A stretch of 64,000 nucleotides of DNA from Azolla caroliniana (lineage: Eukaryota; Plantae; Polypodiophyta): positions 19,592,001 to 19,656,000 of the forward strand of contig JBHGNT010000015.1 in assembly GCA_043228905.1 (NCBI GenBank), written 5' to 3'. Shown one piece after another: positions 1,763 through 63,918 of this stretch; positions within the stretch are counted from its first letter, which is position 1, and each line of letters begins with the position of its first letter. The translations under genes and the position numbers were made by a program. The notes under the pieces were generated by a model that was not told the DNA's origin, searched no databases, and worked only from the letters and a program-made list of their open reading frames with translations.

Positions 1763-1763
1763 T

Positions 1764-2383
1764 TGTGAAGAAAAGGACGATGTATGAAAAAGTGTGTGAG
1801 CACACTTTATTGTAATCCGTGTAGTTGTCGAGTGTTAGTGTGGTCAAAGAATATTAGATATTCTTATGACAAAATCATCCTCAAGTGGATATCTTGGTTA
1901 GATTCCACCAACACATTTAATAGGGCAGTCCCTTGAGGACTTGTATATAAAACCCCCTTTGGCCATTCAGTTTAGTTGATGATCTTTAGATAATTAATAT
2001 AGCTCTCTTATTCCACCAACACATTTAATAGGGCAGTCCCTTGAGGACTTGTATATAAAACCCCCTTTGGCCATTCAGTTTAGTTGATGATCTTTAGATA
2101 ATTAATATAGCTCTCTTAAGTGCATAAGCTGTCATCCCCCTATTGTGTGTTTTCTTATTTTTCTGGTTATTCTCTGTAATTCCTTCTCTTGCTTATACAT
2201 TCACTCTCTCTCACTCTCTCTCTCTCTCACACTACGCTTCTGAATACTAAACTCTACTAGAGTGTGAGGGATAGAGATCCTTCACTGAGCTCTACCATTG
2301 AAACTGTGTGAGCAGCTAGAGACGCTGTTTTAAAACCTGCTATCGTCGCTGCAGTTTTGCACAGCAAGAGGCTCACATTAACA
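1764..2383 (+). repeat. 5' LTR of copia B, 5'-truncated, with a 108-bp internal tandem duplication
   Basis: It matches 6971-7358 with about 8 substitutions. The segment 1903-2010 is repeated at 2011-2118 and includes a TATATAAAA box. The inferred end ...ttaaca at 2383 pairs with the TGTT start of the 3' LTR. Confidence 0.85.
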
Positions 2384-2413
2384 GGATCATACGAATCAAG
2401 CTAAATCAGAAAA

Positions 2414-5400
2414 ATGAATGCACAGATGGGTAGCGGACTTCCAACAGAGAAGTTGGACAGGCACAACTACGCATCTTGGGAATATAAGATGCAGCAGTAC
2501 TTAGTTGGGCAAGGGTATTGGAGTTATATCGAGGGAGCTCAGGAAACAGCCCCCGATATTACAAGTCCCAACTACCCCACATGGCAGCAAGGCGCCAGTA
2601 GGGTAATGTATTGTTTGGCAACATGTGTGCAAGATCACATGTTAAGCTATATTCGAGAAGCGAAAGCCCCAACAGAAACGTGGAAAAACTTGAAGAAGAT
2701 TTTCGCGGCTTCAACCACAGCGAGAAAACTTCAACTCCAGCAGGAGTTGAACAATATTCGGCAGGGGGATATGTCCGTGACGGACTATACCCTCCGGATC
2801 AAAGACTTATGTGATTCACTTGGCTCCATCAATGTCGCAGTTGATGATGAGATGGTGCATATCTGTCTTGGTGGCCTTGCACAAAAATATGGCTCATTTC
2901 GAACTGCCATAACAACAAGGGAGAACCCCCCAAGCTTTTTCGACTTGCTAATGGTTGAGGAGAACCATACACGGTCGAAAAGCACAGCATCTGATGGGCA
3001 GATACTATATACACATGATGATCTCAGTCGAGGTCATGGTCGTGGTCATGGAAATCGGGGGAGGAATGGCCGAGGAAGAGGTGGACGAGGTCCACAACAG
3101 TTTAATTCCAGGCAGCAAGAAGGTCGAAACAGCCAAGGGAATTCCAGTAGATAGGGGAGCTTCCACCAGCCTGCATCAACCAGGTAGAACCAGCAAACCG
3201 AGTGCTAGTATTGTGGAAAGCCTGGCCACTTTGAAGTCGTGTGTCAAAAGAAGAAGAATGACTTAGCTGCCTCACCCCGACAACAAACAAACTATGTTGA
3301 GATGGCTGACCTAGAAAACAAAGCGCCGATGTTTGTTATGCGACACCGGGCAAATAGCATGATAACAAGTGTTTCCCAACCTGATGATGTATGGTTCGTG
3401 GACTCGGGTGTCTCAAATCACATGACAAGTCATCAAGAATGGTTCATGAATTTGAGGGAACCCGAGAGACCCGGCATGGTGGAGACCGGTGATGACTCCA
3501 AACACATGATTGAGCACATTGGAGATGTGGCCCTTAACAATCACGACAACAAGGGCTACATGAAAGATGTATTGCATGTCCCGACAATCACAAAGAATTT
3601 GGTCTCGGTTGGCCAAATTGTCGAACAAGGAATGCAAGTGCGATTCAACCAGGAAGGTTGCTTCATCGAGGATAAAGGCCAACTTATCGCTCATGCAAGA
3701 AGAGAAGGTCGCATGTTTATTCTTGATGCGACGGAGGTGAACACAACAATGTATGCAAAGGGACTCAAGGCGGAGTCTGATATTGAGTTGTGGCACAAAA
3801 GGGTTGGCCATGTAAACCACGGTAAACTCCGATCAATGCAAACAAAAGGGGCCGTGCACGGATTGCCACAATTTACTTCAAAACATCCTGATAATGTATG
3901 TGAGGCGTGCCAACTAGGCAAGCAACATAGGCATCCATTCCTAAGCGAAAGAAATGTGAGTAAAGGCTTGTTGGATGTCATCCACCCAGATGTATGGGGC
4001 CCAACTCAAACAACGACAATCAGTGGGTGTAGGTACTTCGTTACCTTCATTGACGACTATTCGCGGCATACCTGGATATGCCCGATGAAGTCGAAAAGTG
4101 AGGTCTTCTCCCACTTTCTCAAGTTAAAGAATTGCTTGGAAAATGAGACGAATCGCAAGATTCGATGCTTACGGTCTGATGGTGGCCAAGAATACTTCTC
4201 AACTGAGTTCAAGGCCTTTCTAGAAGAGAAGGGGATTCGCCGGGAATTCTCTTGCCCGTACACACCACAGCAAAATGGTGTTGCTGAGCAGAAGAATCGT
4301 ACAATTCTTGAGATGGCCCACGCCATGCTGCATGAGAAGAACATGCCCAAGATCTATTGGGCAGAGGCAGCAGTTACGGCTGTGTATCTCATGAATAGGT
4401 CCACAACCGAGGGTGTCCACGACATCACCCCTCACGAGAAGTATTTTAGGGCAAAGCCAGACCTTTCGCACTTGAAGGTTTTTGGCAGCATTGCATTTGT
4501 GCATGTCCCCGATGAGAAGCGGCGAAAGCTTGACCCAAAATCAGATAAGATGATCCTCGTTGGTTACTCACTTGAGCAAAAGGGTTACAAGTGTTTTAAC
4601 CCCATCACTCAACAGTCACAAGTAAGCCGAGTTGTGGTATTTGATGAGGTGACATCATGGTATGGCCCAACATCAATGACCCCCACCGTGCTCGAAACAA
4701 GCAGATCTGGAGCAGATTCTCAGAGTGAAGAAGAAGAGATGCTAACGACCATTATGGGTGGAGAACCAGCAGAGAGTCTGCCCACACTCCAGCTGACTCG
4801 ACCTGAGGTGTCATCCACCATGAAGAAACCTCTGATGTGCTGTCACCTTTGTGCTACACCTATAGAAAGAAAAAAAAGGGCAAGAGGCCTGAGCAAGAGG
4901 CCAAGGACATGACATCTAGTGAAGACTCAGATCATTCACCCCGATCAGTCCACAGCAAGTATGAAATGAAGAAAGCCCCGGAAATGACCAAAGGAAAACT
5001 CCCTCAATCGAACCGACAAAAGAGCCTGATAGTTAGGTTCGGGTACAATGAGTACATGGCCCACCACTATGCATTCATGATGAAGGTCGCAGCAGACCAA
5101 GAACCCGAGACTTACAAAGAAGCTACCCAAGATCCCCGGTGGATCGAGGCAATGAGGGAGGAGATGCACGTGTTGTTTGACAACGATACTTGGGATTTAG
5201 TCCCATCCTCTGAAATCAAGAAAAAGCCAATTGGTTGCCGCTGGGTGTTGAAGATAAAGCATAATACGGATGGCACGGTCAATCGGTTCAAGGCTCGGCT
5301 AGTCGCCAAAGGGTATGCTCAAACCCATGGCATAGACTATGAGGAGACATTTGCCCCGGTGGCAAAAATGACCACTGTGAGGACAGTAATTGCTCTCGCA

Positions 5401-6699
5401 GCAGCGAAAGGATGGCACTTGCATCAAATGGATGTGAAGAACACATTCCTCCAAGGTGAGCTCGAGGAGGAAGTTTACATGATGCAACCACTTGGCTTCA
5501 AATCAAACAAACATCCACATGCAGTTTGCCGATTGAAGAAGCCGCTCTATGGACTGAAGCAAGCCCCAAGAGCATGGCATTCAAAGATCACATCATGTCT
5601 TCACGACATTGGCTTCCGGATGTCAAATTTTGATAACTCGTTGTATGTTCAGAACAATCCCAAAAGCCCCATCTTCTTAATCTTGTATGTCGATGACCTT
5701 GTCATCAGTGGAGAAAGCCTCACCAAGACACAAGATTAAAAAGTTGTTTTTGCAGAAGTTCGAGATGAAGGATCTGAATGACTCCACAAGGTCATTCAAA
5801 CTCCACAAGGGTTGCTACTCTCACAACGACACTATGTGTTGAACTTGCTCTACAAGTTCGGAATGACCGAGTGTAAGTCCATCTCAAGACCCCTTGATCG
5901 AAATATGAAGCTAACAGCAGATTCTAGAAAATTCTGTGAGCTGACACAATATCGCCAAATAATTGGGAGTCTTATCTACTTAACTATCACCCGACCAGAC
6001 CTCAACTATCCGGTCGGGGTTCTTAGCCAGTTCATGGAAACCCCCCGCGACACTCACATGGATTGTGCTAAGTGAGTGTTACGTTATATTAGTGGAACAC
6101 TTGATTATGGTATCTTCTATAAACGTGGAGCACCACTTCGACTCGAAGGCTTCATGGATGCTGATTGGGCCGGCAATGCATCTGATAGGCGATCCACTTC
6201 GGGATTTATGTTTTCACTCGGTAGTGGAGCAATCTCTTGGAGCAGCAAGAAACAACCAACAGTCGCTCTATCGAGCATTGAGGCGGAGTATAGGGTAGCT
6301 GGTTACGAAACTGTATGGCTTAAAAGACTACTGAAAGACTTCAACGAATTGGTGAACAAGCCAATACTGATCCACTGCGATAATCTCAACAACATCCAGC
6401 TTGCAAAGAATCCGGTGTTTCACGCCCGGACTAAGCACATTGAGGTGCACTATCATTACATCCGTGAGCGCATATTGGCCGGTGACATTGACCTCCAATA
6501 CGTTGGCACCAACATGCAAGTGGCTGATATTTTCACTAAGGCGCTAGGTCTCGACAAGCTACGGCAATTCTCAGTGGATCTAGGCCTTAGACCACTCAAT
6601 ATACTGAACTTGGGGGAGAGTAAAAGTACAAAGACAAAGGAAAACATGGAGAATCAGCACGATACAAGAGGAAGAGCGAGACCGGCATTGGCAAAGTAA
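2414..6699 (+). pseudogene. Disrupted gag-pol polyprotein of copia B
   Basis: Three in-frame TAG codons lie between 3152 and 3210. There are frameshifts near 4870 (A-run) and 5730, a small deletion near 5780 (the usual YFLGIE motif is missing) and a TGA at 6073. Confidence 0.92.
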
Positions 6700-6933
6700 G
6701 GTCAGCACATCTAATCCGACTTGACCCAGCAAGTTAGAGGAAGACTTTCCAAAGCCCGGAATTTTTGAAGCTCAAAATTTTGGATTGGCAAGATCGACAT
6801 TGCTAGATCAAGATCGAGTACATAAAAACAATGGGAAAACCACGGTCTAGTAATCAGACCAACTGCAATTGGGTCTTCAACTACACTAAGACAACCAAGC
6901 TTAAGAGGACACACAATTGACCTTGAGGGGGCG

Positions 6934-7358
6934 TGTTGAGAATCAAGTTCAACTTGTGTGAACATGTGCTTGTGAAGAAAAGGACGATGTATGAAAAAGT
7001 GTGTGAGCACACTTTATTGTAATCCGTGTAGTTGTCGAGTGTTAGTGTGGTCAAAGAATATTAGATATTCTTATGACAAAATCGTCCTCAAGTGGATATC
7101 TTGGTTAGATTACACCAACACATTTAATAGGGCAGTCCCTTGAGGACTTGTATATAAACATCCCTTTGGCCATTCAGTTTAGTTGATGATCTTTAGATAA
7201 TTAATATAGCTCTCTTAAGTGCATAAGTTGTCATCCCCCTACTGTGTGTTTTCTTATTTTTCTAGTTATTCTCTGTAATTCCTTCTCTTGCTTATACATT
7301 CACTCTCTCTCTCTCTCTCTCTCACACTACGCTTTTGAATACTAAACTCTACTAGAGT
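6934..7358 (+). repeat. 3' LTR of copia B, 3'-truncated
   Basis: It starts TGTTGAG directly after the PPT. Identity to the 5' LTR stops abruptly at actagagt (7358). Confidence 0.88.
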
Positions 7359-9258: not shown

Positions 9259-12200
9259 CTGTAGTTGATCCTGAACCATGGAAACCACGCCAATTGATGT
9301 GCTGAATATTCCTGATTTACTGGTTCTGGAAATAACCTGTAGGCCTTTCAAATAACTCAATAAACTCGTTGATCCTGCCAAAACGTTCAAAATCTATGGG
9401 CACTTTAGACATATGAAATGAAATCTGCTAAAAATTACAATGGAAGATTATTCAACATGGATTAGGTATGCATGATCCCCCAGAATTTGCAATCAAGCAC
9501 ATTATGATTAGCTTTGTTTCACTATTGCTTCACAAAAAATGAAGTTCCTACCCATATAGGGGATGTTTCTGAAGAATCTATTCAAGGTTTCCTCTAATTA
9601 TACAGCTTATTCTTGGATAGAATAAATCCATTGAGTAACAATCTTCATAAAATTCAATGTAAATATTTCTTGTGGTTGGTCAATAAGTTACAGCTTCAAA
9701 ATGGCTATTTGCTTTTATGAGTGTGCTTGGTATTTTAATGGCTCACTCATCAAACAAGATATTACATGCATGCATGGGATGGCCTAGTGAGCTGCTTATT
9801 TATAAATGTGTTTTCTACCACTACTGTTTTGCATGAAATATGTGGACTCAAGGGAACATTACGTTGGCTGTTGGAGTGCTTTTATGAAATAAGGAGGAGA
9901 TATCACTTCCCCTTCGATAAAGCCTTTGGCCCACCCCTCCATGGAGGGTGACAGCCCATGAATTCATCTCTCCTTTCTGCAGTCTCTCTCTCTGCACATT
10001 TTCTCTCACTAGATTTACATTGTTGCAGCATTTATTACAATTGACTTTTAGAATGTACTACTATAACAGCATTTAAAGCATTGTTTTCTTTTCTCTGGAC
10101 TACTTTAACTCATTATATACCTAGGAATATTTTATATCCTTCCATAAATGCATGGGCAACAAAACCCGCTCTCATTTTTGTATTTAAAGGCTTTCAGCAT
10201 CATGAAGAAATATAATTCTTGTTTAGCCTCCTGGCATCTTACAGCCGTTTGAAACAGTTTTCTCACATCTTCAAGGTAATGGGATATAAAGACCAACATT
10301 GTTTGGGACTCTTCTTGTTATAAATAAAGAGATATAAAAATAAGTTTGTTGGACAACAATACAACCACATAAGCTAATCAAGAGAGAATCATCATAAATT
10401 TTGTTGCTACAAGTCGATGATTTGCTACACAAATAGGGTCTCAACACAACATTCTGAAAGGACTACAACGGATCAGGTGACAATATTTTTCACACATAGA
10501 CTACATCCATCGGGACCATGACTTCATTACCCTTGTTATCAACAAATCAAGGCCATTATCACCCAACCGCTAAGGTGCTTTCAGCACATCAGAAACCTCT
10601 CCATCTTGGATCAGTCAATGTTACTTTGATCAACAGCCTAGTTACGTACGGAAGTTGTTGGTAGACAGGTCCCTCCGGATGGGAAGGGAGAAGAACAGTG
10701 CCGACGAACAAACTCGGCCAAGGCCGACAGGCCGAGGCCGAAACGGAGAACCGGATGAGGAGTACCCGACTGCGGAGAGTCGGATGGTGTAGGCCCGGTA
10801 TGAACCGGATGAGGAGTACCCGACTGTGGAGAGCCGGATGGAGCCCATCGAGGCTACATTTGTAAATAGCCGAAAAGTCATATTAGTATAAATATGACTT
10901 AGGGCAAACTTTTAGTTATGAGTTGTCATTCTTGTTGTTATTCGTTTGTTGTTGGTGCAAGAAGAAATCAGAGCGCGTAACTGTATAGAGAGAGAGAGAG
11001 AGAGAGACGAGGTCGTTGCCTCTGTTGTAACCGCCGCCTGTGGCGAAGATCTGTGAGCACGAGGTCGTTGCCTCAGTGATCTCACTGTTGTATATTTCTG
11101 CATAGTGACAGTTTGCAGCTTGTGGGCTGCCGTGGTTTTTCCCCTATTTTGGGGTTTTCCACGTATACCTCTTGTGTACCATTTCTCCTCTTTTGTGTCG
11201 CGTTTCATTACCTGTTTTTCTGTGTAAGAAAAGAATCTCGGTTGTGGCCGAGCGTCGGACATAAGGAACGTCAAGTTCTCAACAGAAGCTACATGGTTTA
11301 GGTACAATTTATACTTGCACATGGACGTAACATTTGGTTGGTCGCTTCAGCCTTTTGAAGATGTTAATATAGCACATCATTTCCTTCCTCCCTTGCATTT
11401 GCTAACTGTGCCCAGGGCAGGAATTTGACGGGTGTCATGCCCGTAAAGGGCCATTTTGCCCGTCAAAAACACGCACCCAATAAAAATGTCTGTCAAGTGA
11501 CATATAAACTTACAATTTTCATTTTTCATGTGAAAGGCACCCAAAATTTATTTTCCATTAATGTCATAATACATATTATATATAGTATATTTAATATTGT
11601 AATATGTATTATGTATTATGTATTATGTATATTGTAGTATATGTACAACTATAAAATGTACATACATGATACTACAAAGACATACATAATACTATTATAA
11701 TGTTCATTGTAGTATGTACATTTTATAATAGTATAATTGTATATGTATTATGTATAATGTGAGTCGTGAGTCGTGACTAATAACTATGCTTTCAATGTTT
11801 CATTTCTAAATTCCCGAATTCCCCCTCTTTCTCTTTTCCCCCTATTTTCTCTTTTCTTGCTTTCCTTCTTCCTGCTCCTTCTTCTCGCTTCCTACTCCCT
11901 GTTCCTTGGTCATTGCCCATTGCTCCCAGCACGCTCACTACTCGTTGCTCCCTGTCGCTTCTCGGTGATTGCACATCTGCTATTTGCCACCACTCTGAGG
12001 TATGTATTTGTCTCTTTTTTTTCTATTTTCTCGCTCGAATGCATTCCTCGCTTATTTGACTCGGGTTCGATCCCCAGTTATTTGAGGGGTGGCCATAGTC
12101 ATGGGGGTCATCATGGGCGGCAATAATATGACAAATCAATCAATCTATCTCTCCTCCTGCCCTCCCCTATTCTTGTCTTAACAAACGGTGAGAGATCACA

Positions 12201-15200
12201 AATTATTACAAGAAACTAATCTCATGTTTCGACGTATTTTGTGCTTGGGCATTGGCCAGCCCCCCCCCCAATAATTCTCTTAATATCGAGTATAAATGCA
12301 GCTGGAATAGCACTTAAATTTAGATCTATGACTGGTTGATCTCCATTTCATATGACCTCTCGTAGAGTAAAACATGGTCTCACGTTTTGCATTGAGGATA
12401 CAATCTCATGCTGTCATCCTTACTTTCGATATTTTCTTGGAATAACCCCTTTGAAGTTCACGCCACTTGATTGGCTTTCTTCCCGTTTCTAGATGTACTG
12501 GGGTTGTGCTCTTAACCCCCTAAATGAAGGCAATGAAATCTCTTTTATACTTTCATTGTTTCATTCCACGAGCTTGCTGAAATGCTTCCTCCCATACCTG
12601 TTTTGTAAAGCAGAATTTGTGTGATGCATGCATACGAATGACATTGTTGTAATCTCCCATCTTTGGGTTGTGCGCAAGTGCCACATGCTCTCAAATTCAT
12701 ACTATGAATCTGTGTGGTTTCCATTCACCATGTATTCCAAGTGTGCTGACTAGGTATGGCAACACTGAGGTGTTTGAAACTGTGAACAACTTCAATTGCC
12801 TCCTCTTCATGATACTCTACAGGCTACTGACTTTCAGATTAGACATTTCTTCATAGTCTTGCAATTCGAGGACCAAAAGTGTTTCTGTGTAGACTTCTAT
12901 ACCATGGAACTTCGGAGGCACAAATAGTGCAACATCTCCCCACAACCATCCTAAGAACTCTTACCGTAACTTCGGATTTGCATGTGCATGTAAGCTAATG
13001 TGAGCCTTCATCTTTCTTCATTTTTTTTTGATAGATTGGAAGATCTAGAGTGGAAACTATCCTTTATTGCCCATCTCATCTTTGTTTTTTTTCTTGGCTT
13101 GTGAATTCTCTCAGTTTCAAGAGTATGTCCGAAGTTACGGCAATGTCTAATTTGACAGTCAATAGCCTGTAGAGTATCATGAAGAGGAGGCAATTGAAGT
13201 GGTTCATTGTTTCAAACACTTCGATGTTGCCATACCTAGTCACCACACTTGGAATACATGGTGAATGAAACCACACAGATTCATACTATGAATTTGAGAG
13301 CATGTGGCACTTGAGCACAACCCAAAGATGGGAGATTACAACAATGTCATTCGTATGCATGCATCACACAAATTCTGCTTTACAAAACAGGTATGGGAGG
13401 AAGCATTTCAGCAAGCTCGTGGAATGAAACAATGAAAGTATAAAAGAGATTTCACTGCCTTCATTTCGGGGGTTAAGAGCACAACCCCAGTACATCTAGA
13501 AACGGGAAGAAAGCCAATCAAGTGGTGTGAACTTCAAAGGGGTTATTCCAAGAAAATATCGAAAGTAAGGATGACAGCATGAGATTGTATCCTCAATGCA
13601 GAACGTGAGACCATGTTTTACTCTACGAGAGGTCATATGAAATGGAGATCAGCCAGTCATAGATCTAAATTTAAGTGCTATTCCAGCTGCATTTATACTC
13701 GATATTAAGAGAATTATTGGGGGGGGGGCTGGCCAATGCCCAAGCACAAAATACGTCGAAACATGAGATTAGTTTCTTGTAATAATTTGTGATCTCTCAC
13801 CGTTTGTTAAGACAAGAATAGGGGAGGGCAGGAGGAGAGATAGATTGATTGATTTGTCATATTATTGCCGCCCATGATGACCCCCATGACTATGGCCACC
13901 CCTCAAATAACTGGGGATCGAACCCGAGTCAAATAAGCGAGGAATGCATTCGAGCGAGAAAATAGAGAGAAATAGAAAAAAAAAAGACAAATACATACCT
14001 CAGAGTGGTGGCAAATAGCAGATGTGCAATCACCGAGAAGCGACAAGGAGCAACGAGTAGTGAGCGTGCTGGGAGCAATGGGCAACGACCAAGGAACAGG
14101 GAGTAGGAAGCGAGAAGGAGCAGGGAGTAGGAAGCGAGAAGAAGGAAAGCAAGAAAAGAGAAAATAGGGGGAAAAGAGAAAAGAGTGGGAAAAGAGAAAG
14201 AGGGGGGATTCGGGAATTTAGAAATGAAACATTGAAAGCATAGTTATTAGTCACGACTCACATTATACATAATACATATACAGTTATACTACTATAAAAT
14301 GTACATACTACAATGAACATTATAATAGTATTATGTATATGTCTTTGTAGTATCATGTATGTACATTTTATAGTATGTACATATACTACAATCTACAATA
14401 TACATAGTACATATTACAATATTAAATATACTATATATAATAGGTATTATGACATTATACAATGCCATATATATATATATGACATGGAAAATAAATTTTT
14501 AGCATGTCATTTGACTTGTATAAATTTTGGGCGCCTTTCACATGAAAAATGAAAATTGTAAGTTTATATGTCACTTGACGGACATTTTTATTGGGTGTGT
14601 GTTTTTTACGGGCATGACACCCGTCAAATTCCTGCCCTGATTGGAACGTGGTAATTCGCCTAGCGTGTTATTTCCATATTTTCTGTCAAAACTTGATAAT
14701 AATTGTATGGGGAACATGATATGTGTTCCATATCTTTGCAGGAACTGGATCTCAAGCAGTTTGAGTGGTTAGAATGTGGCAACCCAATCTAGTCGTGAAG
14801 TGGAAGAAAGGGATGGCTTTGCTTCTTGGACTCGCATAAGGATCACACCACGTCCATTGCAAAGGGTCCTAGCTAACCTTACGTAACCATATGTTTTCAT
14901 GAGTACATACATGCCATTTTGGTTGTACTTTGATTGGATTGAGATCTACAATCCATTTACAACCTGTATATCAAGTACTCGAATTACCATGTTCGATGTT
15001 GGTATCTCATTGTCTCGCAATTCATGGCCTTGGATCTTGTCCAGTGTTTCCCTACCTCTTTGGTTCAAAGAGCCCTCCTAATAGCCTATCCACTTCTCCA
15101 TCGTCATTCTTTGATTAACAGCTTCCCTAAGCAATAGAGCTTTCATAATTGCAGATCTCATTGTCCATCCACCCCTAATTCCATGGAGTATCCCTAATTC

Positions 15201-18200
15201 CATGGAGTATGTTGGCTTGATCTTGTATTGGCAATGACATAAACAGTCTCCAACATTCTATACTCTTTCCTAAATCTTAGTATTTGGGATATTTCTATGA
15301 GTTATATTAGATATTGAATTTATTTTTAACATATTTATAGGACCATGCAATTTAAGTCCTAGATTAATGTAAGTACACCTTGCCGTCAATTTAAGGCCTA
15401 AAATGGGAATGTTCTCCATTTGGTATTGAATGTTCCTAACATGCTGAAATACTGTTAAACATGCCATCTTATAAATGACTTCAGATCTCTTGGACACACC
15501 TAGATGATAGAAACTAGGTTTTGTGGCTTTTTCTGCAGCAAGTACCCAATTTGCCATGTGACCTTTGGTGGGGGATTTTGACGCATTGTCCTTACTTCCG
15601 ATATGCATTTACAAAATCTTAGCTTTCTTCAACTCTTTAGAAGCATATTAGGGATCATGGAGTGCAAACCCCTCAAAATAGTGGCATCAAAGTTTCTCTC
15701 TCATATTTTTTCTTCCTTTCCATTCCACGAGCTTGTTGAGCTACTGTCTCTTTGAATTTCAGTTCCAAAAGCAAAGTCTTAATATATTTGAAACTATGAA
15801 CCATTTCAATTACCTCCTCTTCATAACGCACTACAAGCATCCATCCTCGTTTGATAGGGCTTATCACAACGCCATTGACACTTTGGTCTTAGCCACATTG
15901 ACTGGTAGGCTCCTATATTCACAGAAAGTATGTACCCTGCTTAAAAGCTTCTGGAGTCTCCATTGAGAATATGCAAAAATTAAAACACTGTCTATATTGT
16001 GGTGTGCACATCACAATATAAATAGTAAGCAATACCGTGAAATGTCCAAGTACAAGTTGTTGCTCAAGTTCTCCTAAGGCTTTTCGGATGAACTCTTCTA
16101 GATGGGCACTAACCTACTTCTGGATACCTTCGCTACTGTTTTACAACCAATCAGTAACCGTTATGAGAACAGAAATGTGTGAAGATCGCCACTCTCTCCA
16201 AGTTTTTGGATCATCGATTTAGCTGATAACATTTCCTTTTTTTGCCAGATCAGCTAAAGATCACTTCAGTAAAAAGGTTTAAAAGGCATACTTGCTTCAT
16301 GAAACAAATATCCATTAAACATCTAATCTAAGCCTAACCAATCAGTAACCGCTATGTAAACAGAAATGTGTGAATATCTCCACTCTCTCCAAGTTTTTGG
16401 ATCGTCGCTTTAGCTGATAACATTTCCTTTTTTTGCCAGATCAGAAACATTCATTTCAGTAAAAAGGTTTGAAAGGCACACTTGGTTGGTGAAACAAATA
16501 TCCATTAAACGTCTAATCTGAGCCTAGCATAGATATATACATAATTTTGGTTCATTAAAACAATATCCATTGAATGTCAATTAGGACTAGCTTGGTAAAT
16601 TTGTAGTAATATTCCATACCTTTGTGGTCGTTTGTAGCATTGTCTCTGGATCAACATGCATATGCTTCAAGGCAAAATCCAAGAAGAGAAGTGTTAGGTT
16701 TGTATAGAAGAGGTAATTCGAAGTAACAAATCCTCTCCAATCCTCTGTGTAGACTGTGCATTTTGAGCTTGGGTCGTTACCAGAGCTACCACCTAAATTC
16801 CAAGGTTGAATATAATCTAGCCATAACTCTGCAACTTCAGAGACCTTCTTTACATGCTGAGTTAATGATGCAGACCACAATGATGATGAGAAAGCTCTCT
16901 GGAGAAACTTGTATAATGGTCTCTGCAATTGTTGCGAGTATGTACTACTAGAAGGTGTGACCGTGGAAGAATCTGGATTGCAAGAGTTAATTGTATTGTT
17001 TAACCTGTTGATGTGGTTCACAAATATCTGCAAGCTACGGATTAACCTTGAATTTAATACATGGACAGAGCTAGAAACGTGAGTTGAATCTGCATCCTCA
17101 TTACTGAGCCAGAATGCAACCAAGGTATTCACAACAAATTCTCCTCTAGCCCTAGTTTTAGATGTGTTTGAATAATTAGTACTATAGTTGTTCTCCAATG
17201 AATTTTGTCGCAGATCTGGTGGCCATGGATGATCTCCTGAAGAAATGTTAGAAGTTTCTTGCAGAGATAATGAAGAAGAAGATAATGGCGTCGAAACGGT
17301 GACAAAATGTGTCAGATAAAGATGTAGAAGGTGGAGATATGGGTCCACGATATTCAGGACCGCATTGCTATGATGTGAATGCTGACCAGATTGAGTACTA
17401 TAACCAAAACTCGATATTGACCAGTTAGTCAGAAACTTCCGTTTCTGAAACGTTTCCCCAAGACTAAATTTGTTATCTTTCGTCTGATCGGACCCATTTG
17501 TGTTTCTGTTCCCCTTTCTGTTACCGTATCTTTCTTCCTTACTGTTACTGTCACCGTTTCTGTTTCTTTCTTCTTTACTGCTACTGCTCCTTTCTTCTTC
17601 TCGCTCACAGAGAGCGTAGTAAGCAAACCAGAAGAAGAAATACTCAAAAACGTCAATTTGCAGAACAAACGTGTATGACGATGGTTCATTTGATAATGAG
17701 TTATTGGTATCGATCTGTTGCTTGATTCGATCTCTAAAGAAACTAGGCAATTTCGAGAAATTATATCTATGGCTGTGGCTATGGCGAGCTCCATAATTGA
17801 CTGATCTGCCGATAATATTGTCATTTCTCGTCAGATATGGTTGAATCCAGTGCGGGAGCCTCTCCGTGGGGAAGGCGAAGAGCAATGGCGACCTCTGAAG
17901 TTTTTCAAGTTTCGAGAAAGAGCTGAACAAAGGACCTGAAGGGCTCAACAGAGACAGAAGAGATTTCGTCTCTTGTTCAGAATTAGTCAGAGATAGCCAA
18001 CAGTCAGAGCTTCTTGCTGCAGAAGAAGGAGCACACGATAATGGAGTCTGATCACGTCTCTTTCCGTTTCCTTTTTCTTCTTCTTCTTCTTCTTCTTCTT
18101 CTTCTTCTTTTTCTTTCTGTTGGAATCCGAAGATCTTCTGCAGGAGCGATGGGAAGCTGAAAGAGAAGAAATCCCGGGCATGGGAAGCGAAATGTTGACT

Positions 18201-18368
18201 GTGTAGGAGCTCCTCTAGACAGCGGGAAGCAGTGGAGACGGAGTCAAAAGTAGTAGTACTAGAAGTAGCAGAAGAAGAAGAAGAAAGAGAATGGAAAGAA
18301 GTGGTAGGAGGAGGAGGAGAAAGGGAGGGATGGAGCTTTGGTTCTGCAGAGAAGGCGAAGGTCGCCAT
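9259..18368 (-). CDS. Sphingomyelin phosphodiesterase 4 (nSMase3/SMPD4)-like protein, exons 1-2; further 3' exons not identified
   Basis: Exon 1 is 18368-16620 (583 codons, AAG|GTATG donor) and carries DVFEYFFFWFAY, LQRPLYKFLQRAF, ELWLDYIQPW and WRGFVTSNYLFY, which parallel SMPD4-family motifs. Exon 2 is 9393-9259 (tag|ATT...CAG|gt, 45 in-frame codons ILNVLAGS...VQDQLQ). Intron 1 is 7.2 kb. Confidence 0.8.
10640..11332 (+). mobile_element. Probable solo or orphan LTR in SMPD4-like intron 1
   Basis: Termini GTTACGT...ACGTAACA are inverted. It contains a GC-rich 54-bp tandem pair (about 10750-10841), a TATAAATA box, a GA microsatellite and a repeated gaggtcgttgcctc. No TSD was seen. Confidence 0.55.
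11413..14639. mobile_element. Long foldback or inverted-repeat element with CAGGGCAGG termini; arms about 11413-12847 and 13142-14639
   Basis: cagggcaggaatttgacgggtgtcatgcccgtaaa is mirrored at the right end. Reverse-complement identity continues for about 1.4 kb, and the same ORF starts appear on opposite strands (11773+ and 14254-). The spacer is about 290 bp. Confidence 0.93.
13165..13560 (+). mobile_element. LINE RT C-terminal fragment inside the right foldback arm (mirror copy at about 12430-12825 on -)
   Basis: The degenerate translation YHEEEAIEVVHCFKH...ISASSWNE...GVKSTTPVHLETGRKPI resembles the post-RT region of non-LTR elements (IEVVxxFKYLG...LETG). Confidence 0.7.
15270..15870 (-). 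mobile_element. Degenerate LINE fragment related to the one in the foldback arms
   Basis: The translation includes YEEEVIEMVHSFKYI. Shared nucleotide words with the arms include cattccacgagcttg and ttcaattacctcctcttca. Confidence 0.65.
16145..16525. repeat. Tandem duplication, 2 x about 191 bp, in SMPD4-like intron 1
   Basis: aaccaatcagtaaccg...tatccattaaac occurs at 16145 and 16336. Confidence 0.92.
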
Positions 18369-48000: not shown

Positions 48001-51000
48001 GTTATCAATTGATAAATTTTGATTACACATGATGTTTTGGGGATCATCACAATGATATGGTTTCAGGAACATTTTCCAGCTTATATGGCATGTCTGGAGA
48101 ATACACTGCATAGTTCATGAAAAGATCCATATATATTTATGCCTGAGATGTTTGTTAGGCAAGCAACATATTCTTGTCTTATGAGGTTACTCTGGCTCTT
48201 TTAATTCATTGAAAATCTATTGTTTTCATTATGTCAGAGGAAGTTAAGCAACGCTGTGCCTATCTTGAAGACGAATTCACGGATATCCTGGAAACATGTC
48301 AAAAGAAGCTCAAGGTGAAATTTTTAAGTGACTAGATTTCTAGTTTGCAGAGTCAGCAGTTGTTAATAACGTGTTTTCTTATTTTGAGCAGGATATTCCA
48401 CAAGATTTGTTCACTGTTGAATCATTTAAAAATGCCTTTTCAGTGATTGTATCAAGAGCCATATATTTGCCATCTGCAGAACTTCATGCCTTGGTATCTC
48501 CACATTTCATTTCTTTCAATTTGTTTTTAAAAATCATGGAGTTCTTATATATGAAATCCCATCTCTAGTTGGTCTTCATTATGGTTTTGAAGTTTTACTA
48601 CAGGAGAATGTTTTGATCTTGTTGACACTTGAGACTTTTGTACAAAATAAATCTGTGCAGGAAACAGATGTGAAAAAACGTGTACTGAACTAATGATGAA
48701 ATCTCAATGTGGCTGGAATAGTTGAGTGAATTCACATTGAAGCAGATTGCATGGTTACATTTCAAACCTATGGCATAAGACTGTCAGATTTTTCAGATGT
48801 GCTACTGCTGTTGTAATAAGAGGTGCCTTCTAGTCCCAATCCAGAAACAAAAAAAGATTTAATTAGTTCACGTTGTTCAAAATATGAACATGAAAATTCT
48901 CAATGACAGCGTGTTCATAACCAATTAGCCCAATCTTGCACCCCATCTAGTATTTCCATCATTACTTGACAGTAGGTGTTAAATGTACGCTTTCCCATGG
49001 AAGGTTCTAGAAATCTACAGTTCCAGGATAACCTCAAAATGCTTTGAAAACATGTCCAACTTAGTCATCTTGCTCTTAGCAGCAGAGAAATTTGATGCAA
49101 CAAGACTATCTACAGCCCTTAAATGCTCTAATATAGGTTATTGTCAACGCCATTTCACTTGTCCTTTGATTCATGCACATTCGAAATTTCATACACACAT
49201 TAAGGAAATCCCTGTCAATATTGTCCAATTACTCTTTGCGATAAAATTGGAAGAAATGAAACATGCTGAGAATCGAGGTGAGAAACCAGAGAATGAGAAA
49301 TTTCAACTTGTAATGTGCTGAAAATAACTTTCAGCCAGACATGACACATTACTTGCCCTACCATCCCATGCTCATAACCAAGAAAATCAACATTAGAATC
49401 CCAAAAACCCGACTCCGAAGAGCCTTCAACTCTGCAGAGTCTTCGGCTCCAACGAGCTATCGACTCTAGTGAGCCTTCGAGTCACCTAATGTCCGCACCT
49501 TCCTAGTCCTTGTGTCCTCCTTGGTTCAAGTCCCTGGTGGTCCTGTTCAGATTTCACATGCATTTGAGTAACATCGTGACAATGTGTAAAATACATTAAA
49601 TACTTCTTAAAATATAATGTTTTTAAAAAGAAAATTATTTTGAGTGTGTTGAATACTTCGAACGTGTATTATAAAATGTACTATAAAGAAAATATTATAA
49701 AATGGAAGATCTAAAATGTAGACTCCTTCAGAGTATTCTAAACATAGAATACACGTTTTTTAACAACTATGCATGAAACAACGTTAGCAGGACACTAAAA
49801 GGTACACAATCTTACTATTTTCTGCTGAACCTAGTTGTTGCCTTATCTTTTATATGTTTAAACCTTTTTTAGTTGAACTCATCTTATGACATACTTATTA
49901 TCCTTTGTTTGTATCATTGTAGATATTTATTTGCATTTTGCATTAGTGAAGATCTTCCCTCTATATCATTGAAATCACTTCAAGGGGATTTAATGATATG
50001 GATTCTGTTTGGCAGGTTCCCTTTGGAGATGCTGTGAACATTAGTGGTGAAAGTGATACTTTGTTTGAATACAGTGTTGACCAGCAAGCGGTAACATTTT
50101 CTCTCTTTCATTTTATTATAACATTTTCTCTCATTCATTTTATTATAACGTTTTCTCTCTTTCATTTTATTAATGAGCTTTGAAGATTGAGAATATTCTG
50201 AGGAATATGTTTGAAACTTATTTTTGCTATGATCTTTTTCCAGTGTTCATACAAAGCTTGGTTACAATTTATCATAGGATATGTCTTCATGACTTAAATG
50301 AAGCTTAAATGGCCTAAATGGCTTATAGGGTCATTTGACATTATAAATTAATATAAAATTATAAATGGTAGCCTAACAACATTTTTTCACGCTATGTGCA
50401 GGCTTGAAGGAAGTCATATGTTTAAATGCTAGTTAAAAAGTATGAATACTTGTGTCCTCCTTGTTTTGTTTTGATTAGAGATTTCTGACTCATCATAAAA
50501 CATGGAGCTGAACACAGAAGTCCCTACACCCAAGTGTCTATCTTCCCAATGTAATGGCCTCAGCTTCAACAAAAGCGCTTCTAGAGGCCAATAAAGAAAA
50601 GAGTGAACAAACTTCATGGACTGAGCAAAACATCATCACTATCATGGAGAAATGTGTGCCTTGCATTGATGTCACATTGTAGTATTACTTGGCCAATTGG
50701 TAGATCCACCATTACAATTGCTAAACATTTGAACATAATTTAATATCACATCTCAGCCACATGATTTTACTTTTGTGATCCAATCTTCTCTAAACGCATT
50801 GATATTATTGTCTAGCACATTGGAGAAGAGATTTACATATTGTAGAAATGTTACCTTGTGTGCATGTTATGTTCTTAGTTTTCAAGCAATTCATGAATGA
50901 TGCCTTGACAAGTTATGGCTTAAGTCAGCCTGTACATTAAAACAATCAATGTTGAAACTTTATTTGCCATTTAGTTACTAGTTATTTGTTTGACAAAACC

Positions 51001-54000
51001 TCGTAGCAAGAAAGTGTGCATGAATTGTTGAAACCCAGGGATTCAACATGCACAGGAGGTAACATTTCTGTGATGATGTATTTTGCAAAAGAGCTATGAA
51101 ATTTGTTCTCCAATGTGCAAGGTAATAATAATAGCTTAGATGTGTCTAGAGGAGATTGGATCACAGAACTAGAGTCCTATGCTTACGTTACTTGTGGAAT
51201 TTTTGCTTGTCCAAGTAATACTACAATGTGAACAGTGGTGTGAAACATCTTTCTCCTTGACAGTGATGATGTATTTTGCGAAAGAGCTATGAAATTTGTT
51301 CTCCAATGTGCAAGATAATAATAATAGCTTAGATGTGTCTAGAGGAGATTGGATCACAGAACTAGAGTCCTATGGTTACGTTACTTGTGGAATTTTTGCT
51401 TGGTCCATGAACTGTGCTGTCTCTTTTTTTATTGACCTCTAGAATTGTTTTTGTAGAAGTCGAGGACATTGAGTTGGGCAAAGATAGAGAGTTAGGCGTA
51501 GGGGTTTCCATGCTGAACTCCATGTTTTATGATGAATCAAAAATCTGTATTGCAAAAAATGAATTCATTATTACTAGTAGATCCTCAACACTAATCAAAA
51601 CAGTCTAGGGAAAACACATGTATTCGTACCTTTTAACTAACTTTTATAGAAGTGACTTCCTTTTTACCTACACAAAGACTGAGATAACTTAAAGAGAGGT
51701 TTTATGGTTTATGATTTTATATTAATTTATAACGTCAAACAATACTATAAGCCATTTAAGTGGTGATTTCAAACTTTATAAATTGTGAAATATTAAACCA
51801 ATACAATTTCGAACTGAACTGCTATCCCTCAAGCTAAACAAAACCCAAACGGAATCGTTGACCCATTTTGGATCTTGGAACAAACTGAACTAAAGCATTA
51901 AACCATGGTTTTATGGTTTCAATGTTTTGGCTCAAACCAAACTGTTGCCTATTTCTTGTCATACATATAGTTTTGTAATATAGTTTCCATATCCCAAATC
52001 TCAGTTCTTGGTATACATTGTTTATTTTTTTTTCTAGGTGGTGTTGAGTTTGGAGAAAAACCATAGGCAGGGAGAACAGGTGCTTGTGACTTATGGGCAA
52101 AATCGACCAAATTCTGACTTATTAATCAGGTTTTCCATAATAGTCCTGTATTGGGATTCATGAATCATAGAACATAGTTAATTTTATGATTAAGGATGAA
52201 GTTAATGTTCAGTGTAATCTTATCTGTTCAGAGTTTTTAATTTATTGTGATTATTGTTCCGCTCTCTGTATGGGGACAACATGTATTTGTTTTACTAGCT
52301 ATCTTCTACATATATTTGCTTTACATATAAATATGGAGTTTATAATCGAAGTTAAAGAAAACCTTTATGCTTTTTATTGTTTCAGCTATGGTATCGTGGA
52401 CGAGAACAACACAAATGATTTTCTTTCGATAGAGGTTAATGAAATCTTCCTATCTTATAGAGAAAGGCAATTATACTTGCATCTTCATAATGATACGAAT
52501 TCCACATCTTCGTAAAATTCCACAGGTTGGACTGGTACAGGGTGATCCCTTGCGATCACTGAAGTTACAAATATTACAAGTAGCCAATTTCCAAGATGAG
52601 CAGGAATTCCCTCTTTATCTTGACCGGTTCCCAACCCAGGTGTGTATTGGCCTATATGTTCTCACTCAGTTTCTTTCGTGTATGTGTAGTGCATATGTTG
52701 AAGGAAACATTGCATTCTTTAATGTTAATATAAGAAATATTAAACAGAATTGCAAACGTTTCAGCAAAATTGTCTTGCGCTAACACAAAATGACAAATAT
52801 TACAGCTGGTGTCTATTTATCTCATGGGTGGAATGATAAGGGTTACATGGGACAAGTTTGCACAAGTCAGAATAATCATTGATGTGGAATTTTATATCGC
52901 TTAATAGGTCCTTTTGCATATGATTTTTTTCTCACATTTTATGTACATTTGTACCGTGATTTATTATGACCTTTTTAATAATGAAAAATCCAAATACTGA
53001 AATAAATTTGACAGTCATATTTTTAAAAGAAATAAATGCTTTGGGTAAATATAGGGCCATAGATTGACATATTCGCATTCGTTGGGTTTCCCATTCGAAT
53101 GCAAACGAATACGAATACGAATGGGTAGTCAAGTATTCGTTAACCCCCCCCCCCCCCCCAAAATAAAACAAAAAAAAACTTTTTTTTAAAAAAGGTCCTA
53201 AGATAAAAAGAAAGGAACTTAACAATAAATAGGGATAATAAAAGAGGGACTTTGGGGACTTTACACTACTAAAATTTTATAATAAATGTATAACTTATAA
53301 GTATTTTTTTAAATTATTAATAAATAAAAAAAATAAAATAAAGGCTCATTAATTTCTCACTTTTTATTTCCTCAAAATTTATGGATATTTTTATCGTGAC
53401 ATTAAAAATACTTTAAACTAATCATATCTTCAAAGTTCATACTAATTAGTAATCATATTTGTATAATAGTATAAAAATATTCGTTTTAAAAAAATTAATT
53501 AATTAAAATAAGTTTCATAAACTCTCTTGACACTATAATCTATAAATGAATAATTGTTTTTTTGGTGAAATATATTTATTTAAATAAATAAATAATTTTT
53601 TATATTTATTTTACAAAACGAATGGTTTTTTAATATTCTTGGGGCCATTTTGTATTCTCGAATATGGAGAATATTGCGCATGGAGAATATCACGAATATC
53701 ACGCATGTGTCAATCTATGTATAGGGCATACAAGTTTGTTCAGACACTTAATAGATTTTTGAAAGACTTTTTCCAGCATTTAAATTTCCTCATTCTCTCA
53801 AAAATTTTCTATGAATTCTGTGCAACCTTTTTTCAGTTTCCATTTCTAGTACAAGGAGCTCTTATGCATATACCACTCTTAGGAATATGATATTTGTCCA
53901 GTCTTAGTTTATGAACATGTGAAATTTATGCTACATGTATTTGGTATTCCTATGATTCGATATTGTTTCTTTGTTATGTCCGGATTCAGACTGCATTCGT

Positions 54001-57000
54001 TTTCTATTTTGTTCTCATATATCCATGTATTAAATATATGGGCGAATTGTATATCAACACAAACCTATCCCTTGTCTTTGCAGTTGTTGTCATACATGAG
54101 GCTAGCGCGGCTGCAGGATTCAGGCTTAATTGCAAAGATCTCATTTGATAGGGATATTATTGTAAACGAGGTATACAAATGATCCTAACTATCAAAATCT
54201 GGATATTATCATAAGTCAGGTATACAAAATTTAGTTATATAAAGCTATCTAAATTTTATTCTTCTATCCTTCAAAGAGATGACTTCATACATGTATGCAT
54301 GCCTTGAAACATTGATCATAATATTGAGCCAATGAATTCTCATGGAAGATATATAAATGTCTTTCAAGAGGCTAAATGACCTATCAGGTCTAACAAGAGA
54401 TTGAAATGGTGTCTCATCTTTGAGAACTATAGGTTAAAAGAAATATAACTAAATTAGTGGAACTGCCTAAGTTACTAGAGAATCTTGGTAGCGAAGCACC
54501 TAATATTTTGAACTTAGATAGATTGAAACTTCGGCCTTGAAATATTTCTAATATGGGCCAATCCAAGATGGAGATATCTCTGATGTGAGAGAACCACCTT
54601 TGAGATTGAGTGATAATGGCCTTTATCTGTGGATAACAAGTGTGATGGGGTTGTGATCTAGACAGCCTGGTGTACTTGCATGAAAAATAGTTAATGTTGA
54701 ACCTATTGTAACCCCTCTCAACAGATGTGGTCAAGACCCTAGCATGAGAAGAAGTGATGGAGATAAAGAAAGTTGTGGTGGTTTTTTGTTCATGGACTAT
54801 TGTAGTTTTATCGTCTTCCTACAACTTCTCTCAATGTCTCTTTTCTAGAAAGAATGGTCCCAAGCATTGTTGGTCTTTGAGTTCCATTACTTGTGAGAGG
54901 CATTAGTATATCCCTCTTATTCCATGAAAAAACATCACAATGGCAAACATGGTGTTCCCCTGATTCCACACCCCAATGGCACCATTGGTAGGTCCATTAA
55001 TCCATATATTTTCATGCATATCTACCTATCTCAATCTCTAATGTTAAAAGGTCCTGAGCTGCCTTATCACACTCTAGAGCACATGTGATAGATGTGTATC
55101 CATATCAAGTGCCTGATGACAAATCCATCTTTCAATGTGTGTAAAAAGACTGCTTTATATTGCCATCTTGTAACCAAGAGCCATTGTGGGGCTGGTCCAT
55201 GTTCTTTCATTGTCCAATCTAACTATGGATGAATCTTGTTAAAATCTGGTATTATGGATTGATCTATCTCTCTGGGTTTCTAGAAATTCATCTTGATTCG
55301 AAATCTTGCAAAAAAAGCTGTGATGAATTTCATTAAAAATGTGGTGATGTAGGGTGTAGTGCATTTAACATTTGTGCCATGTGATTGGAACCATTCTTGC
55401 CTTTCAGTGTACCAACAATGTCTACTTTTGTATTGGGCCAGCTGTTTTGATAACAAAACTGCCAATCTTGAGTGTTTTTGTTTCTGGAGCTCCCAAATCC
55501 ACTGGATACTGGTGACTGATCAGAATAGTGCTTTGGTTACTATTGGGGCTGCTCCCATCTCTCCGTGGATTATATCATGGGGAACTGATGCTTTGCTTCT
55601 TATCATGCAGGTAATCAATCTGCTGAGTTATTGACTGTGTGTCCTGTAATGATTAGGTATCATGTGTTCTACTCTCTTGAAGATTGATAGAATGGAATGT
55701 TCTATCCACCTAGTAAGGAAACCTTGCTGCATAGTTCTATTAAAGATGTGTGCAAGAAGTGGAACTAAGGTGTCACGGTGTAGATAAAGTGCTCAGGACC
55801 AATAAATCTTAATCTTGGGCCTTTTCAAATTGTAACTGATGATTGGCATTTCTCAGTGTTTGTGGAGTAAAAAAAGGTGTATTTACGTGGGCGTGAGCTT
55901 GTGGGTTGGGGGAGGGCTGCTTGGAAATGCAAGCCCTCACTGAGGTGAAGTGTGCTGGTTTGCCTCACATTAAACAATTTCCATGCTCTATTACTTTCTT
56001 TTCTGAGGAACATGTACTTGCTTCAAATTTGGAAAAATATGATATCTTCTTCCTCACAAAGTGTTGGAAGGGTGCTATGTGTATGCATGTTTTTGTACAG
56101 AAAGCTAGACCTGTTTGAGTAAAGTTTTGCATATCCTACATGCATGAAGTGTATGGCAAAATCTATGCTGCTTGATATGGACTTCCAAGTGTAGTGAATG
56201 TTTATGCTCTTATATTTTTAGTTTTAAACTTTGGTTATTGATTTGTTTCTTTTATTGTGCTTCTTTCTTCTCTCTCATTCATTGAATAGCAATTCCTTTT
56301 ATAGGCCAGTACATGCATACATTTCCATTATGAGATTTTCAGAAGGTATTCTCAACACTCTTTAACAGAAATCAGGATATTTTTTCTTGATGCAGGCGAA
56401 TGAATATGAAGTTCTTACACTGCTTCTGGCTGAATGTCGCAACCGTCTCTCAAATTTTGACAGAAGTCTAGATGATGAATTACAATTAGTTAATAGCAAG
56501 GTAAGGAAGTTTTTTGAGAGTTATGATTACATATGAATTTTAAGTCATGAAGATAATCAATGAAAGGTTTGAGTTTATCGTTTATAGGATATATCAGCCA
56601 AAGAGAAGCTAATGAACTAAAGGTTTGAGCTCATCTTTTGTAGGATATATCAGCCAAGGAGAAGGTAGCAGCGAAACTACGATGCTGTGAACAAAAAATA
56701 TTGACTAATACAATGGCTGCTCTCCGAACACGGCTTGGCCCAATTAGAGGTGTTCCAACTAAAAGTGGTATGAAGGTAAACAAGTCATTATGAACAACCT
56801 AATGTAAATAAACCTAGGATAAGGTATGATCATTAACAAATATGAAACGTTATATCAACGTTTGAGACCAAGTAATTTCCATCTAGCGAGATTTGATATA
56901 TAATGTCTATTCTGAATGTGCTATTTAAACTCTATATGGGATGAAAAGCATCTGCTTGAGATGAAATTTTCTTCTTCGTTACTTATTTGCTAATAGATAT

Positions 57001-61800: not shown

Positions 61801-63918
61801 GTGCTGGGAATACTACTCCAAGCATTGGATTGGCATCGTACCTGCCTCATCCTAAGAATATAGATGTGCGCTTTCACTATATGTTATTATCTATGCTCTG
61901 TGGCACTTTGCCTCAGCCATTCAATCTATTGAACATTTTCAGAATACTGATTATTGAACTGAAATCATTTTCTGCCTTATAGTTCTCATATGTGGCACCA
62001 TTTCATATTTACTCATCTGTGCTTTGGGTTCACATGCTGATAGTTATTATTAGTCTTCAAATGAAACAAAACCTTCCATATTTTCTTTTGGAAAGTATGA
62101 TTTGGATGAAATGTATATTGTGACTCATGTCAAGGTAGTTCCAGCATTCCTTTTCCTCTGTCCTTCCTTCTACAACGTTCTCTTTACCCTAATGTTGATG
62201 TTGGTTGAAAGTTTATTGATAGTTGGCTATCTTTCTTTCCTATTTTCAAAGTAAAATAGATTTATGCATATGAACCCATATGCTTTATGCAATTGAACCG
62301 ATTTGGCACGCTTTCAATTAATAATTGAGGTCTCCTTTTTGCAACTTCAGCTGCATGGTTTGGTAAGTTATTTAAAGGCACACATCATCTGGAATCACTA
62401 AAAGTAGTACTAATTTTGCTGTTTGATAGGTATCTTTGAATGCGCTTGGTCTTCTTTTGCGCCTTGAGTTGCGTGGTTATGGGGATTGCATACGGACCCA
62501 CATTTTTGAAGTAGCAGAGCATCTATGTGATCCAGTAAGGCAGATTCTGAAACAATGAACTGTTTTTGTAATTAAAGAACTGAACATGATGCTTCAGGAA
62601 GAAATGCTTATTATCCTTTTTTTGTCCTTTTCTAATATACTTGGTCATGCCTAGATGTTGTGGCACAATGAGTGGCTCTTGGATGGCCTGGCTGTTTGGG
62701 CTTTAGCTTATGTGGGCCAGTTGAGCACATCAGAACAACTTCTAAAACAGATACAGGAAAGGTGAGGCATATTTATTATTAGTTGACACGAGTTCTTATA
62801 TGGATAGCAAGCTGACTGTGGAACTTTTGAACAGAGTCCATTCCTTGGGTCCAAATGAACAAGGAAACCTACAGGTGTTTGTAAAGGTACGTCTTTGAAT
62901 GCTAAATAGATCTGGTTATGGCGAACTTTCTGCTATTTTTAGTGGAACTTTCTGCAAGTCTTAGCGATATTGGAGAATTTGATTGTTAATGGTACACACT
63001 CTCTGCTGGCTGAATATGATCCCAAATGAAAAATAAGGAGGCATCCAGACTTCCCTTTCTATATGTCAGCTCAAAGTAATGATAAAAACATCAAGCTTCA
63101 AAATTAAAAATGCAAGTTTGGACAGTTTTTGTTTAAGTTTGATAGATTTTATGAGACTGAATGAGATATGCTGTGTCATATTTGCAAACAATAAACCAAA
63201 ATACATATAACTCAATTAGTAAAGCTGTGTAAGGTACTAGCTATTCTTGTTAGCTAAGCACTTAACATTCTGAGCTTAGATGAACTTAAACTTCTGCCTT
63301 GAAGGATTTCCAACATAGGCCAATCCAAGATGGAGTAGTCTCCAGAGTGAGGCAAGCACCGTTGATGTGGGAGGGATAATTTCCTTGATTGGTTGATAAC
63401 AAGGGTGATGGGGGGCATGGTCTAGATGGAGGTGTCTTACATGCACGATAAAATGTCTATTGTCCGATTTATTGCAATCCATTTGAATGTTGTGGTCGAA
63501 ACTCTTCTTGTGTAGCCCTTGGTTGACCTGTAACGTGAATGTTGCAGCTAAAGAAGGTTGTGATGGTTTTTTGCTGATGAATTTTTGTAGTTGTATTGTT
63601 AACATTCCACAAGTTCTGTCTATGTCTCTCGATTTCTAATAAGAACAAGAACAATCATAAGTATCCTTGCTCTTTATATTCCATTACCTTGTGAAGTGGA
63701 CTAAACCCGTCTTCAGAGAGACAGTGGTATCTCCCTTGTATTTCATAAAAAACACTACAATGAGAAACATAAAGAGAGATGAAATGTTACATCCCAATGA
63801 TATTTGTTACAAGGTCTTATTTTTGCAGCTTGCTGAGAGCATGTATGAGTATGGGAAAGGTAACCCTGAAGAAGCCTTCAATGTCCTGGGCGCTTCCTTT
63901 GATACTCTTCAGCTCAAG
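58895..63918 (+). CDS. TTC38: Tetratricopeptide repeat protein 38 homolog, first 11 exons, continuing past the window
   Basis: Exons: 58895-59017, 59317-59469, 59833-59925, 59995-60096, 60994-61137, 61224-61318, 61423-61558, 62430-62534, 62655-62761, 62835-62886, 63829-63918. Motifs include DRWGY, FPKDLVSLKRAQVLCFY, YIYGMLAF, WAQHALCHV and HNWWHLAL. Confidence 0.92.
63225..63780 (-). mobile_element. LINE 3'-end remnant in TTC38 intron 10
   Basis: It shares ggccaatccaagatggag, gataacaag-gtgatgggg and colinear flanks with 54500-54830. Confidence 0.65.

Follow-up and report, generated by a model that had tools for sequence, protein, structure and literature searches.

A facing pair of hAT transposon left ends in intron 1 of an SMPD4-like gene of the fern Azolla caroliniana: a candidate killer-type hairpin

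In a 64,000-nucleotide stretch of the Azolla caroliniana genome (assembly GCA_043228905.1, contig JBHGNT010000015.1, positions 19,592,001 to 19,656,000 of the forward strand; "the window" from here on), positions 11413-14639 form a long foldback that lies in intron 1 of an SMPD4-like gene. The foldback is best read as a single hAT DNA transposon copy that has been rearranged and can no longer move, in which two left ends of the element face each other and are joined at the start codon of the transposase. We are confident in this anatomy and in the descent of the foldback from one hAT lineage. Its layout recalls the killer loci described in maize, and we give a probability of roughly 0.6 to the reading of the foldback as a locus of killer type, that is, one whose transcript would fold into a long stem and could act on the transposon family from which it came.

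The left arm (11413-12847) and the right arm (13142-14639) are reverse complements over an alignment of 1398 columns and are separated by a spacer of 294 bp, which bears out the two arms of about 1.4 kb and the spacer of about 290 bp reported in an initial annotation of this DNA. The arms differ by 29 substitutions (20 of which are transitions) and 13 indels, and the longest run over which they match perfectly is 314 bp. The divergence is uneven along the arms (p 1e-4): it is 2.1% plus 12 indels in the outer 600 bp, 1.0% with no indels in the middle part, and 7.9% in the innermost 127 bp. The terminal 20-mer of the foldback occurs twice, against 0 occurrences expected. A scan of all plausible tip offsets found no direct repeat or target-site duplication around the tips.

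The identity of the arms comes from the family to which they belong. Scanning with the terminal 32-mer finds 12 contigs (L004-L015) in which a different flank each time meets the element precisely at its first base. Among them is L005, a complete hAT element of 4462 bp with an intact transposase open reading frame (ORF) of 747 amino acids. This ORF scores 28.5 bits against PF05699 (over the cut-off) and E 1e-15 against PF25431, contains D224/D295/E688-type motifs, and is 47-55% identical to proteins of Adiantum and Ceratopteris; the transposase belongs with the C17orf113/ZNF862-like hATs (PF25431, PF14291, PF05699) of ferns, mosses, and Taxus. The terminal inverted repeats (TIRs) of L005 are an imperfect pair of 21 bp, in which the right one diverges from the left at base 7 onward, and TGACGG-type motifs are repeated at both ends of the element. 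Thus, L005 has the short, CAG/TAG-type TIRs with subterminal repeats, the dimerisation domain, and the DDE-type motifs of the hAT superfamily. A scan of viral contigs for the right TIR found no match.

The left TIR of L005 is the tip of the foldback in the window, and therefore both tips of the foldback are left ends. One is the true 21-bp TIR at the outer tip of the left arm (11413-11433, forward strand), identical to the tip found with 12 distinct flanks in L004-L015; the other, identified by comparison with the TIR of the parent, is at the outer tip of the right arm (14619-14639, reverse strand). The initial annotation had described the termini as transposon-like. They are indeed transposon ends, but the arms are not long TIRs.

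Positions 11413-13130 (forward strand) are colinear with the left end of the parent, starting at the TIR and extending through codon 2 of the transposase, and the window encodes no transposase codons beyond these two (blastn matches L005 1014-2279 to 11854-13130 at 93%, and L005 366-961 to 11413-11907). The contigs L005, L013, L017, and L019-L022 follow the left arm and then the spacer as far as 13125-13130, and continue into the transposase ORF. Within this left end there is a CT-rich putative exon of the 5′ untranslated region (UTR) of the hAT (11800-11999, forward strand; conserved in L005, L013, and L019-L022), followed by a presumed GT donor at 12000. The loop (12848-13127) aligns to L005 as the part of the parent's 5′ region that was not duplicated. 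It contains a putative acceptor (at 13113-13114 or 13120-13121) and, at 13125, the ATG of the transposase. The sequence turns back at 13128-13130, where a 3-nt microhomology, TCC, joins transposase codon 2 to the inverted strand at 12975-12977. Counted from this junction, the right arm (13128-14639, reverse strand) is an inverted second copy of the left end, according to both the arm alignment and the family comparison. It consists of 14 bp from 12964-12977, then a gap of about 114 bp, and then 12847 back to 11413.

The family is present in several copies. In three DNA runs, contigs of the arm and spacer have depths of 110-400 versus 16-22 for contigs of single-copy exons, from which we estimate, roughly, 8-10 close hAT copies in run X1. 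Among the flanks of hAT insertions, 12 of 17 have an A at -2, and 8 of 17 a T at -7; there is no single copy with both true flanks, and a test of flank symmetry gives p 0.06 for 8 bp and p 0.01 for 2 bp. The 8 bases outside the TIR of the right arm match this nTnnnnAn target bias. In a related hAT subfamily, represented by contig L012 (1265-3470), terpene synthase exons (PF03936, E 4e-22) come after a truncated transposase, which could be a Pack-type capture or a mere neighbour; the right end lies off the contig.

The host gene is on the reverse strand, and we searched for its homology exon by exon. Coding exon 1 (16620-18368) matches PF14724 (E 3.6e-10), has its best matches in Ceratopteris and Adiantum, and is represented by contigs in RNA run X14. 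At exon 2 (9259-9393), the tblastn alignment of the fern homologues resumes at the next residue without a gap. Intron 1 (9394-16619) thus contains the whole foldback, and in the Adiantum homologue the first intron falls at the same codon. An X14 contig departs from the genome at 16620 and continues as the letters of 9364-9393, which is the splice of exon 1 to exon 2. Both the intronic placement claimed in the initial annotation and the exon junction that it proposed to look for are therefore supported. X14 is a two-haplotype sample and need not carry the foldback. Between 15400 and 17600, X2 and X14 each have two haplotypes, one window-like and one taxon-C-like; both samples are probably hybrids, despite X14 being labeled as the main organism of the window.

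When the host-sense strand is folded, another check that had been suggested, about 1375 arm-to-arm pairs form with a minimum free energy of -2561 kcal/mol, and the inner part of the foldback has a folding z of -48. An Rfam search for non-coding RNA families found nothing. The stem still has about 790 perfectly paired windows of 21 nt. We observe that 588 of the 2080 stem 21-mers occur exactly in L005, and 1638 of the 2080 with at most 2 mismatches, while none of the 2080 matches the coding sequence of L005 with at most 2 mismatches: only the leader and the intron are paired.

From this, a mechanism can be proposed. Host transcription across intron 1, and possibly also transcription from either of the inward-facing hAT promoters, would produce an RNA folding into a stem of about 1375 bp. 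Small RNAs, if the stem were diced, would match the TIR, the subterminal region, the promoter, the 5′ UTR, and the intron of the hAT, sparing its coding sequence, and their likely action would be transcriptional silencing in trans, like that of Ac killer 1. A target is available in the intact members of the hAT family. Dicing and silencing are both steps that we infer. We slightly favor the view that the foldback yields small RNAs, and we doubt that it matters for the silencing of the family.

In Ac killer 1, the 5′ ends of Ac form an inverted repeat within the first intron of a host gene; this intronic hairpin is transcribed from the host promoter and produces double-stranded RNA (dsRNA) and small interfering RNA (siRNA) (10.1101/2020.01.07.897926). 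The maize composite insertion id1 produces siRNAs of 21-24 nt and heritable silencing (10.1101/2020.01.07.897926; PMC13635294). Like Ac killer 1, p1-ww-id1, and id4, the Azolla foldback is of the hAT superfamily and has inverted 5′ terminal repeats that include the TIR, the subterminal region, and a transposon intron; like p1-ww-id1, which is read from the promoter of its host gene, it is placed in intron 1. Unlike the Ac composite insertions, which contain 1.8-3.9 kb of Ac sequence between 8-bp target duplications, the foldback has no duplication, and its repeat ends at the start codon. And while those insertions came from a genetic screen with siRNAs and silencing demonstrated, the foldback arose naturally in a fern, has aged there, and is known from its sequence. 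Mu killer (PMC3440606) also consists of two copies of one transposase-side terminus in an inverted duplication, and read-through from a flanking gene has been proposed for it; but it is a Mutator derivative, both sides of which contain about 1.3 kb of mudrA (PMC3440606), whereas the foldback is a hAT with zero coding sequence paired. The initial annotation had invoked Mu killer, and the analogy proves tighter than the letters alone could show: an autonomous hAT has had its 5′ end duplicated in inverted orientation, in the intron of a transcribed, spliced gene. The capture of a long interspersed nuclear element (LINE) by the arms is not borne out.

In summary of the layout, killer loci and the foldback have in common that the 5′ end of an autonomous DNA transposon is duplicated in inverted orientation, with two like termini; the foldback differs in that no gene body is paired and there is no 8-bp target duplication. 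Because of these two differences, and because the functional features of killer loci are no more than predicted for it, we do not file it as a member; in anatomy it would stand as a variant of this type of inverted duplication. The killer loci in the literature cited here come from maize stocks, in events caught soon after arising. If the reading is true, a naturally arisen copy aged by 1-2%, in a genome where the family keeps intact transposase genes, would be evidence that triggers of this sort can last in the wild, and beyond seed plants. A hairpin without coding sequence would also make promoter silencing separable from the slicing of mRNA, and the private alleles of the arms would tag any small RNA coming from the foldback.

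Several observations weigh against a killer-type role. Intact 747-aa ORFs are present in several of the family assemblies. The inner junction and the private alleles of this copy are absent among the contigs listed for any run, in a read-contig comparison that covered 12848-17600 and so one arm only; the foldback allele may be private to the assembled plant. RNA run X14 has no contigs from the arms of the foldback, although contigs cannot prove absence and introns are rarely included. Changes tolerated by G:U pairing have no bias for the host-sense strand (8 vs. 12, p 0.5), and so give no sign of selection for pairing. Finally, the 24-nt class of small RNAs is weak in many ferns outside Polypodiales (PMC5569507).

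The main alternative, then, is that the same rearrangement is an inert scar: the intron is spliced out and degraded, or is heterochromatic, and the family would be silenced just as much without the hairpin, through the ordinary Pol IV-type pathway. The lack of a selection signal on pairing is what an inert scar would leave, and so are the 13 indels and 29 substitutions that have accumulated, a host mRNA that splices normally, and the persistence of intact hAT members. On the other side, some 790 perfectly paired 21-nt windows remain, and the intronic hairpin of Ac killer 1 did give dsRNA and siRNA from a host promoter. We regard the inert scar as possible, and less probable than a killer-type locus. 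The strongest form of the killer-type reading is unlikely, and we offer it as a conjecture: a natural, long-kept fern killer locus, in which a promoter and leader hairpin in a host intron keeps an intact hAT family transcriptionally silent, in a plant where the 24-nt pathway may be weak.

How did two left ends come to face each other? The two arms have 20 substitutions in common that are found in none of the 7 family assemblies, and both differ at no fewer than five positions (12142, 12145, 12147, 12230, and 12600) from the high-depth contigs of their own taxon. The latter is the fairer comparison, because L005 is more like the sister taxon's version (allele at 13503). The uneven divergence described above could suggest instead two independent, older members of the family, inserted in opposite orientation and homogenized in mid-arm by gene conversion. 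However, the innermost segment still has the private states of the left arm at 12820, 12842, and 12964, which argues for the same lineage, and the excess changes are nearly all in the right arm and adjacent to the junction, as error-prone repair synthesis predicts. We therefore consider two independent insertions quite improbable. The 8 derived changes of the right arm that cluster within 84 bp of the junction would fit such synthesis. An inner piece of the right arm copied from a different template was also considered, and is not supported by the family comparison; the 114-bp difference between the arms is compatible with a deletion or with an older insertion.

For a single lineage, a simple fold-back would have given the right arm a copy of the left flank. 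What is seen is a right arm that ends precisely with the TIR, beside unrelated DNA whose first 8 bases match the target bias of the family; this points to outer ends made by the transposase and an inner join made by repair. Both outer junctions would most likely come from a daughter copy that hopped nearby in inverted orientation, or from alternative transposition with re-replication. The inner junction would come from microhomology-guided repair that deleted both coding regions, both right ends, and any intervening DNA. This route, which we infer, would explain why there is no target duplication and why the flanks are unrelated. The right flank (14640-15391) is a truncated, very-high-copy repeat without colinearity to the left flank, with contig depths in the thousands (reaching 13,000 versus about 20 for single copy). 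The left flank (9880-11390, forward strand) is the 3′ end and tail of an RTE-X-like LINE, matching copies at 54400-54970 and 63165-63750 and in the intron of the orthologous Adiantum gene; within it, at 10656-11284, there is a solo long terminal repeat (LTR; TG...CA) with a 5-bp target duplication that has one mismatch. A single LINE, interrupted by a small deletion, was considered as the source of the two flanks and rejected, as the right flank does not continue the left one.

Long inverted arms that end in transposon termini are also found in Mutator-like elements (MULEs) with long or multiple TIRs and in foldback elements (PMC3310237). But long-TIR MULEs are mobile and their long TIRs are their own ends (PMC3310237), unlike the foldback, with a TIR of 21 bp and arms that duplicate one end. 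The 9-11-bp duplication and the multiple copies of the entire unit that mark this class are likewise not seen for the foldback. A long-TIR MULE was discarded once L005 had been found. More generally, a mobile foldback or Pack element with 1.4-kb TIRs and a captured LINE piece could seem attractive, as arms and spacer are multi-copy and the joint of left arm and spacer has a depth of 73-148 in two studies. That joint, however, is the normal sequence of the parent, for which reason the idea that the whole foldback is multi-copy was dropped. All eight family assemblies run on into the transposase and none of them turns back, the parental right end is different, and a target duplication is missing. 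For mobility, an Ac-type element requires a left end together with a right end. We find a mobile element very improbable. Equally so is an assembly artefact, either from a read that folded back on itself or from two family copies joined in error, which the missing junction contigs and the blank look-up for an ORF across the inner junction would allow, but which conflicts with the ancestral segments that each arm retains and the other has lost (the left arm keeps 19 bp, the right arm 29 and 26 bp), with the repeat ending exactly at the TIR between unrelated flanks, with the out-of-register junction, and with the exons of one gene on either side.

The initial annotation had seen a captured LINE in the inner 400 bp or so of each arm. 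There is a LINE-like piece, larger than claimed (about 12130-13058, reverse strand, through the spacer) and degenerate. It belongs to the parent's own 5′ region, being present in L005, L019, and L020 (other high-depth copies leave the alignment at 13058), so the arms did not capture it. It lies after the GT donor at 12000 and before the AG acceptors just 5′ of the ATG, and is probably an old insert in the putative 5′ UTR intron of the hAT. Its LINE identity is weakly supported: the protein-level score is 59 versus a shuffle maximum of 49, a Pfam search of the arm pieces and atlas look-ups were blank, a word search with the piece matched the locus itself alone, and a large protein search gave repeat-protein noise. 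In the L013, L021, and L022 subfamily, this insert has a 380-bp deletion (window-equivalent 12145-12527).

The related LINE piece noted beside the foldback is a separate, older LINE-like fragment from the reverse transcriptase end (15390-16000, reverse strand; RVT_1 E 0.011, below the cut-off), and its similarity to the arm is just 52 bp at 83-85%. Siblings of this LINE had been proposed as further targets of the hairpin. For the one copy that could be tested (15270-16000), 0 of the 2080 stem 21-mers match exactly and 18 match with at most 2 mismatches, and judging from these matches the fragment at 15390-16000 is too diverged for siRNA targeting. Free LINE copies nearer to the arm piece exist in the reads (85-95%), through which arm small RNAs might have a minor effect on LINEs.

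Elsewhere in the host gene and the window, a 191-bp tandem duplication with 90% identity lies near the 5′ end of intron 1 (16145-16526). A second and far older foldback at 50315-51758 has arms that are about 76% alike over 580 aligned columns, one with a 190-bp tandem duplication, and bears no relation to the hAT of 11413-14639. Intron 2 of the host gene contains a copia-type element (1763-7358) with LTRs 95-98% identical, the left of which includes a 108-bp tandem duplication, and an older copia remnant adjoins it at 1-1750.

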